Translations under genes and position numbers: made by a program | Shown here: positions 12,194-52,481 of the stretch, piece by piece | Position numbering within the stretch: position 1 is the first letter of the stretch | Layout: every line of letters starts with the position of its first letter | Notes under the pieces: generated by a model | What the model was told of the DNA's origin: nothing | Databases searched by the model: none | Seen by the model: the letters and a program-made list of their open reading frames with translations, nothing else | From: Vitrella brassicaformis CCMP3155 | Taxonomy: Eukaryota > Protista > Chromerida | Length of the DNA stretch: 64,000 nucleotides | Reading direction: 5' to 3' | NCBI GenBank assembly: GCA_001179505.1 | Contig: CDMY01000335.1 | Coordinates: 51,770-115,769 of the forward strand

Positions 12194-14361
12194 TTTCTGG
12201 GTGCGGTGCGAGCCTACGGTTGTCCCTTTGCAGGTCGATGAGCAGGTCGGGGTTGACAGAAATGTACGCGTGGCGCTTGTTTTTCGTGAGACCCTACACA
12301 CATTCGCGACCCACACAGACAGACAGACAGACACACATGGCATGGTGCCAAAGAGTGCGTGTGTGTGGTGCGTGCCTGCTTCTGGTTGATGTGGCCCACG
12401 AACGCAGTCAGCACCCGGCCCTGCCAACCCATGCGACACATACAGATGGATGGATGGATGGACGAGCATGGTTTCTGCCGGCTTGTCGCAGGTGTATGTG
12501 TGTGTGCGACCTTGCCACTGCCGGTTCCGTCGCCCAGACAGTACCCTCCTCGCATGCACGAGCCCAAGATCTACGTCGCAACAAGGGCATCTATATGGCT
12601 GCCTGCGTTGGTTGAATGTGGTCGTGTGTGGGAGCGGGGAGGGGGTACCTACCTTGTCTGAGCAGCGGGATGCCTGGATGAGGGACTCCAGTTGGATGCT
12701 CGACAACCTGATGCACACAAGGCAACAGTCACACACAAGATGGATGGATGGATGGATCGGTTTGTGTGTATGAGTATGTGTGTGTTACAGGCCGTGCTCG
12801 ATGACAAATCTGCAGACGATGCCACCACCACCACCGCCAGAAGCGTCAACGCATACACAACACCAACACAGCAGAGCACAGCGAGGGGTGGGTGGTTAAG
12901 AGCACGGTGCTGTACATCCCTCCCTCCCCCGGCCACACCGGCCACAAACTAACACCCTTTGGTATGTAGAGCTTCTGCCCGTGTCGGAGAGGTGGCAAAG
13001 ACACCGCATGGATCGTGGTCGACTGACAGACATGTCAGTCAGTCACAGTCACACACGCGTGGCGTGTGTATTCTGGATCGATACCTACGTCACGTGGGTG
13101 CGTGAGTGCGATAGATACCTCTGCAAGTGTCGCAGGGTGCGGGTGGGCCTCAAATTTGATGAGTGACGACCTTTTCACGGCCTTCATCACACCATTTGCA
13201 CCTGCACCTGCACCTGCACCACCATCGCCATCGCCATCATCCCCACCAACCTGACACAAACACAGCAGGTACGCCTACACTGCCCCATCTGACTGTGTGA
13301 GCGTATGTATGTGTGTGTGTGTGTGCGGGGCGGCGTGGTGTGGTTACGTGTGCGTCATTGTCGTCGTCTGAGCTCTGGTCGAGTGCGTGTGGCAGCAGGA
13401 AGGGCTGGATGGGGTTCTTGTGGGCCTCGTTCCAGTTCTTGGGCAGACCACTGAGCGGGTCGGGCACACGACCACCACGAGGACCACCACTAGGACCACC
13501 ACCAGCCGCTGAGTCGACGGGAACAGCACATAGCAACCAGCACACAACAGGTAACTAACACGCAGAGAGAGTGTGGGGTGCGTCCTGTGACTCGTGTGGT
13601 CACGTCGTATGCGCACCTGCCGCTGCAGCATAAGGGTGGGCGTCGTCATCGCCGACCAACTCTCTCCCTCCCTGCCTCCCCTCTCTGTGTCGTGGGTATC
13701 CCCCCTCCCCCCATCCCATCCCCCCAGCCCACCCGTCGTTGAGCCACTCGTCGTCATTATCGCCGTCGTCATCGTCATCGTCATCCTTCTCCACCACATA
13801 CCTGACACACACAAACACATGGATGGACGGATGGATGGATGGGTGGACAGACATGCATCAATCGCCACTCCCGCCCGCCTCAACTCACCGCTTCCTGCGT
13901 GCCTTCCGCACACTCTCGCGAGGCGAGCGACGCACGCTGCGCCCACGCCCACGTCCACGCCCACGTCCACCAGAACCGACACCCGCATCGCCCCCTCCGG
14001 CCGCTGCTACAGCTACAGCTACACCATGCCGATCCCTGCCGCACGTCATCTCGTCGTCATCCGACTCCCCCTGGTAGGTCGCCAACTCCGCCGCCCGCGC
14101 CACCTCCTCATCGGCCATCTCCCTCATCATGCCAGCCATCTCGAGCTCGTCGTCGGCATCGAACAAACCATTGTCGGCGGCGGCAGGTTCGCCCTTGACA
14201 ACGGGCTTCTTGACGGCCCATGCAGGGGGCGGCTTGGCTGCTGCGCCACGGCTGGTGAGCAGAACTGGTGTGGCTAGATCGTCAGCCGGCGAGAGCCCCC
14301 CCTCCTTGACTTGCTCCGCCCCGGGCGAGTCGCCAAGATCAGGTGGCCCGCTCCCCTCCAT
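3118..14361 (-). CDS. SBNO: Strawberry notch-like helicase-related protein (AAA_34 plus Helicase_C_4 type domains), many exons, with an extra C-terminal region
   Basis: Spliced motifs [12 protein letters not shown] (~12530), [10 protein letters not shown] (~11560), [17 protein letters not shown] (~9700), [10 protein letters not shown] (~9000), VAELTGR (~8850), [29 protein letters not shown] (~8180), FMNRLL (~6910), HILSG (~5270). ATG at 14361 opens an acidic N-terminal exon; last exon ends ..LADVWGG* at 3118. One N gap inside; exon boundaries approximate. Confidence 0.92.
10639..10938. other. Assembly gap (300 N) beside a G run; similar gaps at 14544-14843, 30445-30744 and 61522-61821
   Basis: All four gaps are exactly 300 N and abut G or C runs, so they are fixed-size placeholders. 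Confidence 0.97.
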
Positions 14362-15017
14362 CAGCTCTCACATTCGAGCAGGAGAGCAGATCCACTCCCA
14401 AATGACGACAGGACGGCTGAGGCGACAGAGAACGACAGAGGGAGTGCTGTTCAAGAGGGCACACACAAAACCAGAGCCTCGTGGAATCGGGGAGGCGCAA
14501 ATGACGTTCTGGAATTGAGCTCGAGCGCGAGCTTAGCTTGCAGNNNNNNNNNNNNNNNNNNNNNNNNNNNNNNNNNNNNNNNNNNNNNNNNNNNNNNNNN
14601 NNNNNNNNNNNNNNNNNNNNNNNNNNNNNNNNNNNNNNNNNNNNNNNNNNNNNNNNNNNNNNNNNNNNNNNNNNNNNNNNNNNNNNNNNNNNNNNNNNNN
14701 NNNNNNNNNNNNNNNNNNNNNNNNNNNNNNNNNNNNNNNNNNNNNNNNNNNNNNNNNNNNNNNNNNNNNNNNNNNNNNNNNNNNNNNNNNNNNNNNNNNN
14801 NNNNNNNNNNNNNNNNNNNNNNNNNNNNNNNNNNNNNNNNNNNCCCCCCTCCCCTGACGAGCCGCTATGTCTGGTCGCGACTACGTCGGAGTGCCGCCAA
14901 ACGTCCAAACCGACTCGTCACGCCTGTACGAGAACGGGAAAGAAGATTGAATTTCATGAATTATCAGAGCCACCATGATCATCTCACCATTGCTTTGTGA
15001 CCATCATGCGAATGCAG

Positions 15018-18000
15018 GCCTCCCGGCCTCCTGGGGAGCTCCAGAACGGGTTCGGCGAGGGAGTATTACGGCGGCTTGTCCTCTGAGCACGTGTGGCTGG
15101 ATGTCGTGGGCAAGGACGGCAAGGACACAAAGGAGGCAAAGGACGCAAAGGAGGCTGGGCTGGATGGAAAGGGGCAGGACAAGGATGCCAACACCGACAC
15201 CAAGGAGGTACGTAGGTGAGGTGCAAGCCAGATTGACATCCTCGTCCATACATCGTCGATTCACATGTGTGCATGGCATTGGCTGCAGCGTCGAGATTCC
15301 CTGCAGCTGTTGCTGCGTCTGCAGTCGCTGCTGCCGCACTTCTCGCCCAAGGACACCAGCGGTGCCGACGCACTCACGCCAGAGGCCCGCGAGGAGATCA
15401 TCCGGCAGCTGCTGCACGAGGCCTGCTGCGAGTTTGAAGTGGCTCTCAAGTCAGAGACGGTCTCAGGTACGGAATGATGAACAGGACACAGACGGACACT
15501 CTTGGTGCCTGCCTACCTTACCTGCTGCTGATGGTTGCGCGTGGACGTGCAGTGATTTTGTCGGTTCTGGACCGATACGTCGGGCAGATTAGCGTGCCCA
15601 GGGAGGAGGGAGACGCTGAAGGACGAGAGCAGGCACAAGACCAGGAGTGGGAGGGAGATGCCGATGTCGCCGATGACGAGTCGCCGACGGCCGACAGAAC
15701 CGAGGCCCTGCGGGAGCTGGGCAGCAATTTGCTGCAATTTCGCCACGGCGGCACCACCCCCAGCGCCCCGCAGCCGTCAAGCAGGCTCATCAGACAGCTT
15801 TCGATGCGGCAGCATTCGACGCTGAAGGGCGACATCGACAGCCCGCGTCGTCTGCCAACCATGTCGCCACTGGACGAGGGGAGGCAGGACGACAGCTGGC
15901 AAGAAAAACAGCAGCGGCGGGCCTCCCAGGCTCAGCAGCGTGCATCCGGGGAAGGCTCAAAGGTGTCCAAAGCAGGGGGCGGTGACGAGCTGACGGCCTG
16001 GGAACTGTCCTCGTGGGTCGGCCATAATCAGGTGCGTAGTGTCTCCAACCCACACCCACACCCACACCCACACACATTCATTTAAGCTTATATGCGCTTG
16101 TGTGTGTGCGTGTGTGTGTGTGTGTGTATCTGTGCATCTAGCGTGGTGAGGTGTTTGTGAAGCTCTCCCTGACCGTTCTCTCCACCGCAGCGTTGGTGGG
16201 GTACGGCCCCTACTTCCTGACCCAGCCGAAGAAGATGGAGATGTTCGGGCTGGGGCTCTTCTTCGCTCGCGGTGCCGCCATGGCCCTGATGATACTCTCA
16301 GGCATACTCGTCATCACCATGTGCAGGGGGGTCCTCACGGCATTTCGATGCACATGGCTCGGGCGGCGGTGTGCCGTGCTGCTCGATATGCACAGGGAGT
16401 TCCACATATTCGCAGGGGAGCTGATTGTGGTCTTCACCGTCATCCATGTGGCCGCACATACCGGGGGGACGGTGCCGAGTCTGTCGAGCACGACTGACAC
16501 GGATGGGCTGAATGAGGCCATCAACAATGGCAAGTTCGACGAGCCCCCGAGCTACCTTGACCTGGTTCTCAGCTTACCGGGGTGGACCGGTCAGCGTGTG
16601 GATTATCTGTGGGAGAGACAGAGACAGGAGCCTCCATTCATCGCTTGTTCGTTTGTGTGTCCCTCGCTTTGGGGGTGTAGGTGTGGTGCTCACCTTGATC
16701 ATTGTGGCGATGACGGTGACTTCCCTGCCATCGGTGCGGCACAAATATTTTGAAGTCTTCTGGTCAGATTTTTTCGAAGTGCGGCACAAGCGTTTTCGAC
16801 ACACACTGTCGCTCACGACATTTGATTCCTTCTTGGCCGCCAGGTACCCCCATGCCGTACTCATCTGGGTCTATGTAAGTCGCCTGCACACACACACGCA
16901 CACACACACGAATGGCGGTGCTACGCGGCGGCCAAGTGACCAGTCAGTCCTCCTGTGCGTGCCTTTGTGTGCGGCAGTTCATCTTCATGTGTCTCCATGG
17001 CATGATTGGGTTTCTGAACTGGGGGTGGCCACTTAGCTTAGTCATCATGGGGCCGGCCATGTGCTGCTACCTGGGGGAGAGGCTGTTGCGCCAGTGGCGC
17101 TACTTTACGTGGGACGTGCGAGTCAAGTGGGCACTGGTACGCACACACACAGAGAGGGGGGGAGAGAGATGGAGAGATTAGCCAAGAATGAGATCGACGG
17201 GCGGAGAAATGGCTGGCCGGATGGACTGAAATGGTGTGTGAGGTGTGTGGTGTGACAGGTGCCGAAGGATGAGACAGTGGTTTTCCTGACACTCTTCAAG
17301 CCAAGACAATTCTCCTACAAGTGCGGACAAGTATGGGACGAGGCAGGCCTACCCACATAAGGACACACACGGGAGAGATGGAGTGCGTGTGTGCGCGTGC
17401 GCGTCTGTGCGCAGGTGGTGTGGATGTCCTGCCCTGCGATCAGCTGGTTCGAGTGGCACCCCATGAGTATCTGCAGCCACCCACAGACACACGACAGCAT
17501 CAGACTCATGATAGGCAACGCGGGCGACTGGACTGACAGAGTACATAACACACAACACACAGCAAACCACCAACCAGCACACCTCTCTCTCTCTAGCCAA
17601 CAATCTGATCTGCACCCGAGAGACAATAAGTACACATATGCGCCCGTTGTCCGTCGTGTGTGTAGTTCATCTCTCTGTGCCACGAGGCCAACCTTGCGGT
17701 GACCGAGGAGCGAGGGCAGTTCGGTGCGCCCGTCCCCTTCTACCCCCCAGTGCGTCTCGACGGTCCATACGGTAGGGTTGCCTTTACGTCTCCCACGCAA
17801 GAAAGATCAAGAACAGCCTTGTTCTTACTTGTCCATGTCCATCAAGGCGCCCCCGCTCAGTTCAGTGTGTACCAGGTAAGCAGCCACATGTCTCAGCTAG
17901 TCAAGCGTCTCATCTGTATCAAATGTCTCACTCACAAACCAGGAGAACGTCGTCTTTGTGGGAGCCGGCACAGGCATCGCTGCTTTCCTCGGATTCTTGC

Positions 18001-19034
18001 ACGCCCAGGTGCTGCAGACATACACACACACACACGCACAGACATGCACTCGACTCGAGCTCGTGGATGGATGGATGGATGCAGTTCAGCCGCGAGTTGA
18101 GCGACCACTTCGAGATCACTGAGCACGGGACGCCGGTCCGGGCCGACCCACACAAACGCAAGTTTCGCAAAGCGCACTTCTTCTGGATCTCAAGGAAGCC
18201 CACGGGCATGGTAAGTAAGCTGGTGGTCGGATGTATGTGGACCACTCACATGGCTAGGGTGGCTGCGATGCAGGCGTGGATAGCCGAGGAGGCGGTCAAG
18301 TTGGTGGAGGACCCGCAGATCTCCTCACACGTGACCCTCCACATCTGCCTGACAGCCAAGAAGCCCCCGCCGCCCCCGCACATCAAGCTCTTCCTGCTCG
18401 GCATGCAAGCGGCCTCAAGGGAGATCACCGGCAATGGCAGAGGCAGCACGGCGTCGCTGCGGGGCAGCGGATCACCCCTCTTGCACGCCAAGAACAGCAA
18501 ACCGACAGGACCACCCGCACCAGCAGCAACGGGGAAGGAGACATCAGCTGCTGGTGGTGGGGGTGCAGAAAAGGGTCGTCGTCCGTCTCAGGATGAGGCT
18601 GCGACAAAGATACAGGCGCTCGTGAGGGCACACCGGGCGAGACGTGACGTGGTCAGTCAATCAGTAGAAGGACACATTCTTTCAGAATGCCCATTTGTCT
18701 ATGCCTGTCTGCCTGCCTGCCTGCCTGCCTGTCTGTTCAGCTTGCCGACCCGCCGCTGCACGTCAAGTTCGGCCGGCCACAGTTCGGTAAGTCAGAGAGA
18801 GCAGTCAGGGAGGGAGACAGACGTTCACCTCCCACGTCACACGGGCGGCCATCGATCCATGTGTGTCTTGCCCCAGACGTGGAGTTTAGGAAGGTTTGTC
18901 GCGCTGTGAGCCCCCAGGCGGTGAAGATATTCGCCTGTGCCGGCGAGTCGGTGTGTGAGGCCATGGCGGACACCTGCATTCGGCTCAGAAAGGAGGGTTT
19001 CACAATCGAGATGATTACCGAGAGCTTTGGGTGA
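15018..19034 (+). CDS. NOX: NADPH oxidase / ferric reductase family flavocytochrome with an IQ motif in the dehydrogenase domain; 5' end uncertain
   Basis: FARGAA in TM2; heme His pairs FHIFAGELIVVFTVIH and (spliced) FWYPHAVLIWVYFIFMCLHG; FAD site FEWHPMSICS; VRLDGPYG; NADPH site VVFVGAGTGIA; FFWISR; VKFGRPQF; IFACAG; terminal ITESFG*. Canonical GT-AG introns. No EF-hand seen in the N-terminal exons. Confidence 0.92.
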
Positions 19035-19283
19035 GTCCTTCCCCTCCTCTCCTGATGCATGTATGTGATTGCTGTGGGTTGAGTATGCGCTATGATATGG
19101 GTGTGTTTCTATATGTCAGTGTGTCCCTTTCTCTCTGTATGCTCGCTCATTAGTAGCTATAGGACCGAGTGAAGTGCTTTCCGGATGACGATGGATCGAC
19201 CACGTCGCTCAGCCAGCATCTCTCAGGGCAAATGGTGTCCGGGTGTCGGCATATGAAAAGACAATCAGCCACGCAACGGCAGC

Positions 19284-51483: not shown

Positions 51484-52481
51484 TGGAGTGCGAGTCGGGG
51501 CAGCCGCAGCCATTCGGCGCTCCGCTCGGGGCACCCATGCCGCTATCCGTCCGACACTGCTTGACGACCACAACACTTCAACGACCGCCCTTCCCTCGGC
51601 CGTCTGGCAGGCCCTGTGCATCCCCGCCGACACAAGCAACCAGAAAAACCTCCGGCAATTAAGCGGAAGCTGCCGCACGTGCAGCACAGCAGCCGCCGCG
51701 AGGACGAGGGCACTTCGTCACGTCAGTCACCCGAAAGTGGTCGTTCAGGGGCCTGAGGCCTCTGGCGGTGTCATGCAGACGGACATGGTGTGCGAGTCAG
51801 ACGGCGGAGGGCCGTGAGTGAGTGGCACCAGAGGGGAAGCACACGTCTACATGCTCGATCTACATGGTCACCACTACTCGCAGGTGCCCACTCACTGCGC
51901 TAGCTGCCTTCGTCGGAACAAGTAAGCAGAGAAAAGACACAAGGTGAAATTCCTTATGTCTGATGTGCGTAATTAATGTGATGTGTGTATGTGTGTGGGC
52001 AGAGGAGCAGGCACTTCGCCGTGCTCTGAATCGCCCCTCGGCTTCCGGCTGGTGTGCAGCAAAGCAAGACCGGCGGCAAACGTCAAGCCCCACCAGTGAT
52101 AGAGCGACTGACTGACTGAGTGACATTCATGTTTGGGGTGCGGTGCCCTGGCTGTCTGTCTGGCTGTCTGTCTGTCTGTCTGTCTGACCGTGTGTTGGTG
52201 CTTCGTGGATGGCTGGATGGCTGAGTTTTTTGGGGGCTGTCTCAGACAGAGAGAGGAAGAGAGGCGTATGTACACACGACCTGCCTGCCCGAGGGCCTTG
52301 ACTGATGCACACTTCATTGGCCGCGTTGCGTAGCGTAGCGTTGCAGGGCACACACTCCCACTGGGCTATGCGTTGTTTTGACCCCACTTGTGTTCCCCGC
52401 AAGGCAAGGGTAGGTCATGTAGGTCAGCCATATGTGGTCTGCTGCGCTGCTGGGATGGATGGATGAGTGGATAATTTGTGT
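51484..52481 (-). repeat. Right arm of the ~1 kb inverted repeat (partner 45169-46166)
   Basis: Reverse complement of the left arm; its inner end is 173 bp upstream of the ATG at 51311. Confidence 0.97.

Follow-up and report, generated by a model that had tools for sequence, protein, structure and literature searches.

An EF-hand-less NADPH oxidase gene of Vitrella brassicaformis with a putative IQ motif in the loop equivalent to the regulatory EF-binding domain of NOX5

NADPH oxidases (NOX; NADPH, reduced nicotinamide adenine dinucleotide phosphate) are activated through fused EF-hands (NOX5, DUOX and RBOH), through phox and Rac subunits (NOX1-3), or are constitutively active (NOX4). Here we analysed a NOX-family gene of the chromerid Vitrella brassicaformis CCMP3155, which lies at 14867-19034 on the + strand of a stretch of 64,000 nucleotides (the window; positions 51,770 to 115,769 of contig CDMY01000335.1, assembly GCA_001179505.1), to which all positions below refer. 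An initial annotation, made from the letters of the window, had described the product as an oxidase without EF-hands that carries an IQ calmodulin-binding motif inside its NADPH-binding domain, and had proposed from this a separate route to Ca2+/calmodulin control. The observation was confirmed by our analysis, and the interpretation was partly supported. Of the outcomes that the initial annotation had named as refuting it, none was obtained in the checks that were run.

The described element that comes closest is the 'regulatory EF-binding domain' (REFBD) of NOX5, which comprises residues 638-661 in the human protein (hNOX5) and 611-634 in that of Cylindrospermum stagnale (csNOX5), and in which Asp611 and Asp631 of csNOX5 correspond to Asp484 and Asp500 of NOX2 (PMC7317449). 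The crystal structure shows the REFBD as a disordered, exposed segment, and mutation of its aspartates abolished the Ca2+ activation (PMC7317449). Cryo-electron microscopy of human NOX5, whose REFBD contains D638 and D658, revealed a helix that, at rest, links the Rossmann fold with EF-hands 3-4 and that Ca2+ binding displaces, and a REFBD peptide inhibits the enzyme (PMC11088703). A calmodulin site has been claimed in the NOX5 dehydrogenase domain at about residues 674-699 (Tirone and Cox 2007, as cited in PMC3591440 and PMC8777244); residues 674-685 have been judged to be buried, and their interaction with calmodulin to be fortuitous and physiologically unlikely (PMC7317449).

The feature that sets the Vitrella protein apart is located in the exon at 18274-18651 (+ strand), which encodes residues 718-843 and contains the end of a core strand (HICLTAKK), an expanded regulatory loop and the IQ motif. 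The exon is open for 126 codons in frame 1 and closed in the other two frames, and is bordered by an AG acceptor (ending in ...gcag) and a GT donor (starting with gtcagt), with both ends in phase 0. It reads AWIAEEAVKLVEDPQISSHVTLHICLTAKK (AWIAEE...LTAKK), continues through a stretch rich in Pro, Gly, Ser and Ala, and ends in DEAATKIQALVRAHRARRDV. About 93 residues separate LTAKK from D842, compared with 16 in NOX2, which makes the loop about 75 residues longer. The IQ motif occupies 18592-18651, with a strict core at 18610-18651 (I830-V843) that includes D842, an Asp conserved in the NOX family. When the exon was scanned against Pfam, IQ (PF00612) was the sole family to match, at exon residues 108-125 with 23.3 bits against a cut-off of 20.3 (E 4.5e-5). 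The core, IQALVRAHRARRDV, agrees with the IQ consensus [FILV]Qxxx[RK]Gxxx[RK]xx[FILVWY] except for Ala in place of Gly. With a strict search pattern that allows either residue, [FILV]Qxxx[RK][GA]xxx[RK]xx[FILVWY], a match arose by chance in 0.5% of whole-protein shuffles and in 0.035% of loop-only shuffles. The coordinates and translation of the exon and of the IQ segment given in the initial annotation, and its reading of the segment as an IQ consensus with A for G, were correct.

The position of the motif in the fold was determined by alignment with HMMER. Residues 836-858 (AHRARRDVLADPPLHVKFGRPQF) align with residues 494-516 of NOX2, so that D842, at position 13 of the IQ motif, falls on NOX2 Asp500. 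Since NOX2 D500 is in turn csNOX5 D631 and hNOX5 D658, the Vitrella IQ motif occupies the segment equivalent to the REFBD, away from the disputed calmodulin site of NOX5.

Another copy of the gene is present on a different contig of the same genome, and encodes a protein of 1,011 residues (CEM16473.1; P0002). At the IQ position this paralog reads DEAVKKIQALIRGHRARKDV, and its core, IQALIRGHRARKDV, matches the full consensus with the canonical Gly at position 7. We compared the homologous exons of the two paralogs codon by codon. The core flank gave a proportion of synonymous differences (pS) of 0.75 and a ratio of non-synonymous to synonymous proportions (pN/pS) of 0.16, and the block PPPPHIKLFLLG.QAAS gave 0.73 and 0.04, respectively. 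The synonymous divergence of the core is saturated, and the duplication is therefore old. The aligned codons of the linker, which also differs by indels, gave a pS of 0.56 and a pN/pS of 1.0, and the 23 codons of the IQ block gave 0.41 and 0.52. Within the IQ block the consensus positions I1, Q2, R6, G/A7, R11 and hydrophobic 14 are all kept, and the replacements are V/I, A/G, R/K, T/K and A/V. As judged from these codons, the linker drifts neutrally while the IQ motif is held. The two genes also have in common the intron directly after the IQ motif (...KDV followed by gtgagt in the paralog). The paralog (G000:C477:275240-278866, minus strand) has no counterpart of the intron at 18211-18273, and its exon runs unbroken from QFNRHL to RARKDV.

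Whether the insertion is retained in transcripts was examined in assembled contigs. The locus was found in seven sequencing runs, and the contigs of four of them were compared with positions 15000-19100 (4,101 letters). Spliced contigs were present in three runs from different studies (X1, X6 and X7), and one of them, a 3,185-nucleotide contig (X6 record 14), spans every exon of the gene. The runs carry no RNA label on record, and were taken as RNA because only spliced RNA would yield such contigs. Eleven of the 16 introns were seen as GT..AG joints at the exact boundaries of the gene model; the remaining five flank simple repeats, which were skipped in the comparison. In all three runs the exon 18273-18651 was unbroken, with zero internal joints and zero differing letters, and in each of them 45 contig letters, corresponding to the exon 18741-18785, separate 18651 from 18876. 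Internal splicing that removes the insertion was thus rejected, although such contigs are unable to reveal a rare or minor alternative isoform. Because the exon is intact and the neighbouring introns are removed, we can conclude that the gene is expressed and that the insertion and the IQ segment are part of its mature messenger RNA (mRNA).

The gene model, rebuilt from the sequence, consists of 17 exons with 910 codons and a stop codon. The exons lie at 14867-14925, 15018-15207, 15289-15466, 15553-16031, 16142-16589, 16681-16762, 16844-16874, 16978-17136, 17259-17330, 17415-17540, 17666-17771, 17847-17875, 17943-18008, 18085-18210, 18274-18651, 18741-18786 and 18877-19034, all on the + strand, and all 16 introns are of the GT-AG type. 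When protein databases were searched exhaustively by phmmer, with the transmembrane exon (16142-16588) as query, the product was found to be 100% identical to a database protein of 910 residues (CEM02763.1 / A0A0G4EWD1; P0001). All exon peptides of the model are present in this entry in the same order, with one-residue gaps only where codons are split, and the entry bears only the generic name 'FAD-binding FR-type domain-containing protein'.

Several lines of evidence point to a NOX identity of the encoded protein. It matches the Pfam families Ferric_reduct (48.9 bits), FAD_binding_8 (53.1) and NAD_binding_6 (30.6), all above their cut-offs. The NAD_binding_6 match covers residues 654-886 for 156 model positions, which therefore indicates a large insertion in this domain. 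The solved structures nearest in sequence are NOX2 (E 6e-32), DUOX1 and NOX5, with values ranging to E 9.5e-26. An AlphaFold2 (AF2) model made from 45 relatives has a core of 362 residues with a predicted local distance difference test score (pLDDT) of at least 90, and its top Foldseek matches are again NOX2, DUOX1 and NOX5, with a TM-score of 0.73 by target length. The exon at 16142-16589 (+ strand) encodes transmembrane segments TM1-TM3 and, judged by the Ferric_reduct match and the alignment with NOX2, contains Arg364, the heme ligands His390 and His404, the NOX signature His408, and Thr451. The four heme ligands H390, H404, H482 and H496 are invariant in the 45 relatives and align with H101, H115, H209 and H222 of NOX2. 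TM5 has a one-residue insertion relative to NOX2, and the 13-residue spacing of its His residues is like that of ferric reductases (FRE).

His119 and Thr178 (NOX2 numbering) separate oxidases from ferric reductases (Zhang et al., PMC3591440). H408, T451 and R364 of the Vitrella protein align with NOX2 His119, Thr178 and Arg54, and because these equivalents are present, we classed it as a NOX rather than an FRE, and a ferric reductase identity is disfavoured, the His spacing of TM5 notwithstanding. The initial annotation had left the choice between production of reactive oxygen species and metal reduction; of the two, the residues favour O2 reduction. The motif WHPMSICS for binding of flavin adenine dinucleotide (FAD) is encoded at 17415-17540 (+ strand), where FAD_binding_8 scores 32.5 bits on the exon, and the glycine motif for NADPH binding (GAGTGIAAF) at 17943-18008 (+ strand). 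Of the latter GxGxxP element, G660, G662 and G664 are present, and Ala667 takes the place of Pro. This Ala is found in P0001 alone, with Pro in 44 of the 45 aligned proteins, including the paralog and that of Chromera. The NOX2 equivalent of Ala667 is P415, a site of disease mutations. The P0001 copy may thus bind NADPH differently. Downstream of the insertion, the exon at 18741-18786 (+ strand) encodes LADPPLHVKFGRPQF, where the GRP motif returns to the conserved NADPH-binding fold; R855 and P856 are invariant, and the 45 contig letters match it. Taken together, the protein is predicted to be a NOX-type NADPH oxidase that spans the membrane with six helices, contains two hemes, an FAD domain and an NADPH domain, and is without EF-hands.

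The absence of EF-hands, which the initial annotation had noted in the N-terminal exons, was substantiated in two ways. No EF-hand family of Pfam matched any N-terminal exon at E <= 10, or the whole of either Vitrella paralog at E <= 1, and the canonical EF loop pattern was also absent. The N-terminal region matched neither an EF-hand nor any other family in Pfam, matched nothing in a profile search of the PDB, and had no usable Atlas match. It contains four conserved predicted helices (residues 79-204), and AF2 modelled residues 78-212 with a mean pLDDT of only 49; at this confidence, a cryptic EF-hand fold within the N-terminal 300 residues would be possible. The first exon was revealed by an X6 contig, in which a loose end of 75 nucleotides upstream of 15018 corresponds to 14852-14926 (donor 14926, acceptor 15017). 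Inside this mRNA contig, an in-frame TGA at 14855-57 precedes the start codon ATG at 14867-69 (together 14855-14869, + strand). An assembly gap of 300 N at 14544-14843, in which EF-hands might have been hidden, lies between the divergent start codons at 14867 (+) and 14361 (-) and is non-coding for the NOX open reading frame (ORF). Because the in-frame stop precedes the ATG inside the transcript, the gap is unable to encode EF-hands of the NOX protein, and this possibility was rejected, also in view of the divergent neighbour from 14361. The neighbouring ORF (window 13885-14361, minus strand) has 158 codons, its product is acidic and rich in Gly and Arg, and about 500 bp separate its start from that of the NOX gene. 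A divergently transcribed gene probably has its first exon here, and the 300-N gap would then probably lie in a shared promoter region. Short microsatellites of the types (GGAT)n, (CA)n and (TGCC)n are found repeatedly in the window, both within introns and between genes, for example at 12740-12760, 13820-13845, 18066-18082 and 18700-18735, and because of them four intron junctions were passed over in the contig comparison.

Within the expanded loop, three parts can be told apart upstream of the IQ motif. A conserved block, PPPPPHIKLFLLGMQAAS, at 18364-18417 (+ strand) forms the start of a predicted helix of residues 752-774 (pLDDT about 75; pN/pS 0.04 against the paralog). It is common to the paralog and Chromera and, more loosely, to dinoflagellate relatives in the alignments. 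This is followed at 18418-18582 (+ strand) by a low-complexity linker that is predicted to be disordered, with pLDDT below 50 for residues 775-823, and that is the part with a pN/pS of 1.0 and indels. A few residues upstream of the IQ motif, at 18577-18588 (+ strand), the alignment contains RRPS, an RRxS site that reads RRYS in the paralog. Conserved in an otherwise neutral linker, it could be a candidate phosphosite for basophilic kinases of the calcium-dependent protein kinase (CDPK) or protein kinase A (PKA) type, and could tune the binding of a partner. In the AF2 model the loop thus consists of the helix 752-774, a disordered tether (775-823) and a helix over the IQ motif (823-839, pLDDT about 50). 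At this low confidence, the picture is consistent with a segment that folds on a partner.

The distribution of the motif was determined among 155 family proteins (81,803 residues), of which only the two Vitrella paralogs contain the strict IQ pattern. The other 148 relatives are all without the motif. Orthologs with the motif were not found, and the Vitrella paralog was the only close relative, in the best 150 of the 159 matches of the exhaustive search with the transmembrane exon and in a word search with the dehydrogenase domain. Among the 45 aligned full-length relatives, EF-hands are present in five and IQ in two, these being the Vitrella pair. In a FastTree phylogeny the Vitrella pair falls in an EF-hand-less clade of 31 sequences, which includes the dinoflagellates Togula and Biecheleria, and the proteins with EF-hands group in the other clade. 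Cvel_2153 of Chromera velia (P0092) is sister to the pair, although by a long-branch join. The model of this protein agrees with the pair in the first loop helix and in the start of the linker (GRGS...RGSG), then goes straight to PLLSINFGRP. The missing IQ segment is either a real lineage difference or the result of a mis-called intron in the protein model. With regard to conservation, therefore, the motif is kept in an old paralog, but the conservation is shallow, confined to the Vitrella pair, and present data mark the IQ motif as a feature of the Vitrella lineage. The relatives differ in the length of the loop, which ranges from 28 to 245 residues. A different conserved insertion of 97-245 residues (FLFREAVRRQSxVDR ... 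LPWCWV..DVLWVS) occupies the same loop in P0005, P0012, P0021 and about 17 further dinoflagellate-type relatives, as a module at this regulatory hot spot of the family. The Vitrella genome also contains a third, distant gene of the ferric-reductase family (G000:C243:387394-388013), of which the FAD-binding exon alone was alignable, with no EF-hand match nearby.

How might the IQ helix act? We consider it somewhat probable, by analogy with NOX5, that calmodulin or a calmodulin-like protein acts on it in trans and replaces the fused EF-domain. The Vitrella genome encodes canonical calmodulin and centrin, which are candidate partners; the last exon of the calmodulin gene lies at G000:C319:71740-71886. 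Complete IQ motifs typically bind at resting Ca2+, and a calmodulin-type EF-hand protein would probably already sit on the IQ helix in this condition, as a detachable subunit. Upon a rise in Ca2+, the bound sensor would alter its grip and shift the helix relative to the Rossmann fold. This shift would relax the NADPH pocket and allow hydride transfer to FAD, and from there onward via the hemes to O2. The sensor would then play the role that fused EF-hands 3-4 play on the REFBD helix in NOX5, as a NOX5-like switch with its sensor in trans, and phosphorylation at the RRxS site upstream of the motif may modulate the binding of the partner.

Several observations weigh against a calmodulin-type sensor on the helix. 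In the full-length proteins the Pfam IQ score is marginal (20.5 bits for P0001 and 20.0 for the paralog, with the cut-off at 20.3), and AF2 predicts the IQ helix with low confidence (about 50). D842 and V843, which end the motif, belong to a NOX-wide D-V/I-x-T-G-L element, and part of the IQ match is therefore inherited from the fold. The motif is conserved only between two paralogs in a single species, and in the alignment the segment is missing from the Chromera velia protein model. The pS of the 23-codon IQ block (0.41) is lower than that of the core, and because of this lower synonymous divergence partial gene conversion between the paralogs is possible. In addition, Ala667 in place of the conserved Pro of GxGxxP could weaken the NADPH binding of P0001. 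Some of these points would fit a basic amphipathic helix of the REFBD type that works without calmodulin, its IQ resemblance being incidental. Such a helix could pack on the NADPH lobe as an autoinhibitor, or could serve as a dock, either for a cytosolic partner or for the N-terminal helices of the same protein (79-204). In all NOX enzymes that have been studied, partners dock at this loop (PMC7317449, PMC11088703), and the ancestral D-V pair, the marginal Pfam score and the four conserved predicted helices of the N-terminal region all agree with such a role. However, the six IQ consensus positions are all kept in both paralogs and the non-consensus ones vary, the DEAxxK prefix upstream matches that of bona fide IQ repeats of RSP23, and no family, of EF-hands or otherwise, matches the N-terminal region. 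We regard a calmodulin-free helix as unlikely.

A less probable possibility still is that the loop expanded neutrally as low-complexity sequence, and that its IQ-like end matches by chance and has persisted only through descent or through gene conversion between the paralogs. The neutral evolution of the linker, the Chromera model without the segment, the wide range of loop lengths among the relatives, and several IQ-core codons that are identical in both paralogs all speak for it. On the other hand, the pattern is rare in loop shuffles (0.035%), the flanking exon with its pS of 0.73-0.75 dates the duplication as old, the replacements in the IQ block (V/I, A/G, R/K) are all compatible with the consensus, and the block is situated at a known regulatory hot spot of the family. 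Finally, an artefact of annotation or assembly (a retained intron, a mis-joined exon), or EF-hands hidden in the gap, had no finding in its favour and is extremely improbable, since spliced contigs of three runs keep the exon with the neighbouring introns removed, and since an in-frame stop stands upstream of the ATG inside the transcript.

If a calmodulin-type protein does act on the IQ helix, it is possible, and we propose it tentatively, that the gene represents a 'split NOX5', in which Ca2+ control returned to a NOX lineage without EF-hands when a tethered IQ helix arose at the REFBD site, with free calmodulin as the detachable subunit. Such an independently evolved solution would mark the loop as a universal NOX on-switch. 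In searchable literature we found no description of an IQ motif in any NOX, or of an EF-hand-less NOX whose REFBD-equivalent loop contains one. Recruitment of calmodulin via such a motif would constitute a fourth arrangement for the activation of a NOX. The motif, placed in the activation loop of NOX5 and NOX2, would provide natural and independent evidence for a common control point of hydride transfer, and would bear on the dispute whether calmodulin can regulate the NOX dehydrogenase domain. The two paralogs would serve as replicates, and one peptide with calmodulin would make a simple study system. The reach of these proposals is that of a prediction for a single species.

Comparison with known systems places these features in context. 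The best match of the Vitrella IQ segment among solved structures is the IQ repeats of Chlamydomonas RSP23/NDK, where DEAATKIQALVRAHRARRDV compares with DEAATKVQAAFRGYQARKEV and the DEAxxK prefix matches too. In contrast to the RSP23 array, Vitrella has a single candidate binding motif, which lies within an oxidoreductase loop. Among the EF-hand-less relatives, the proteins of Togula (P0012), Biecheleria (P0021) and Chromera (P0092) belong to the same EF-hand-less clade and share the loop-starting helix with the Vitrella protein. Unlike it, they have no IQ motif, and the dinoflagellate ones carry another conserved insertion. The NOX2 loop 484-504, with Asp484 and Asp500, is the same aligned segment as the Vitrella IQ region and is needed for activation by p47phox/p67phox, but it is short, depends on phox subunits for activation, and contains no IQ motif.

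The initial annotation had cited the calmodulin site in the dehydrogenase domain of NOX5 as its precedent. That site likewise would put calmodulin on a NOX dehydrogenase domain, but it is downstream of GRP, inside the fold, and of the hydrophobic 1-5-8-16 type instead of IQ. This precedent needs correction, as residues 674-685 are judged to be buried (PMC7317449) and the Vitrella IQ aligns with REFBD 638-661. The alignment makes the REFBD the closer and stronger analogy. NOX5 of human and of Cylindrospermum stagnale has the same catalytic core and the same loop of the NADPH lobe, and its second conserved Asp (hNOX5 D658, csNOX5 D631) is Vitrella D842. Where NOX2 has the first conserved Asp, D484, the Vitrella protein appears to have Lys, by counting along from T744 and not by alignment. 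In NOX5 the REFBD helix is held by the fused, calmodulin-like EF-hands 3-4, whereas the Vitrella protein has no such fusion, has a loop longer by about 75 residues, and has a helix of the IQ type, a signature that implies a separate EF-hand protein. The catalytic core is that of an ordinary NOX, and the difference lies in the regulatory arrangement.

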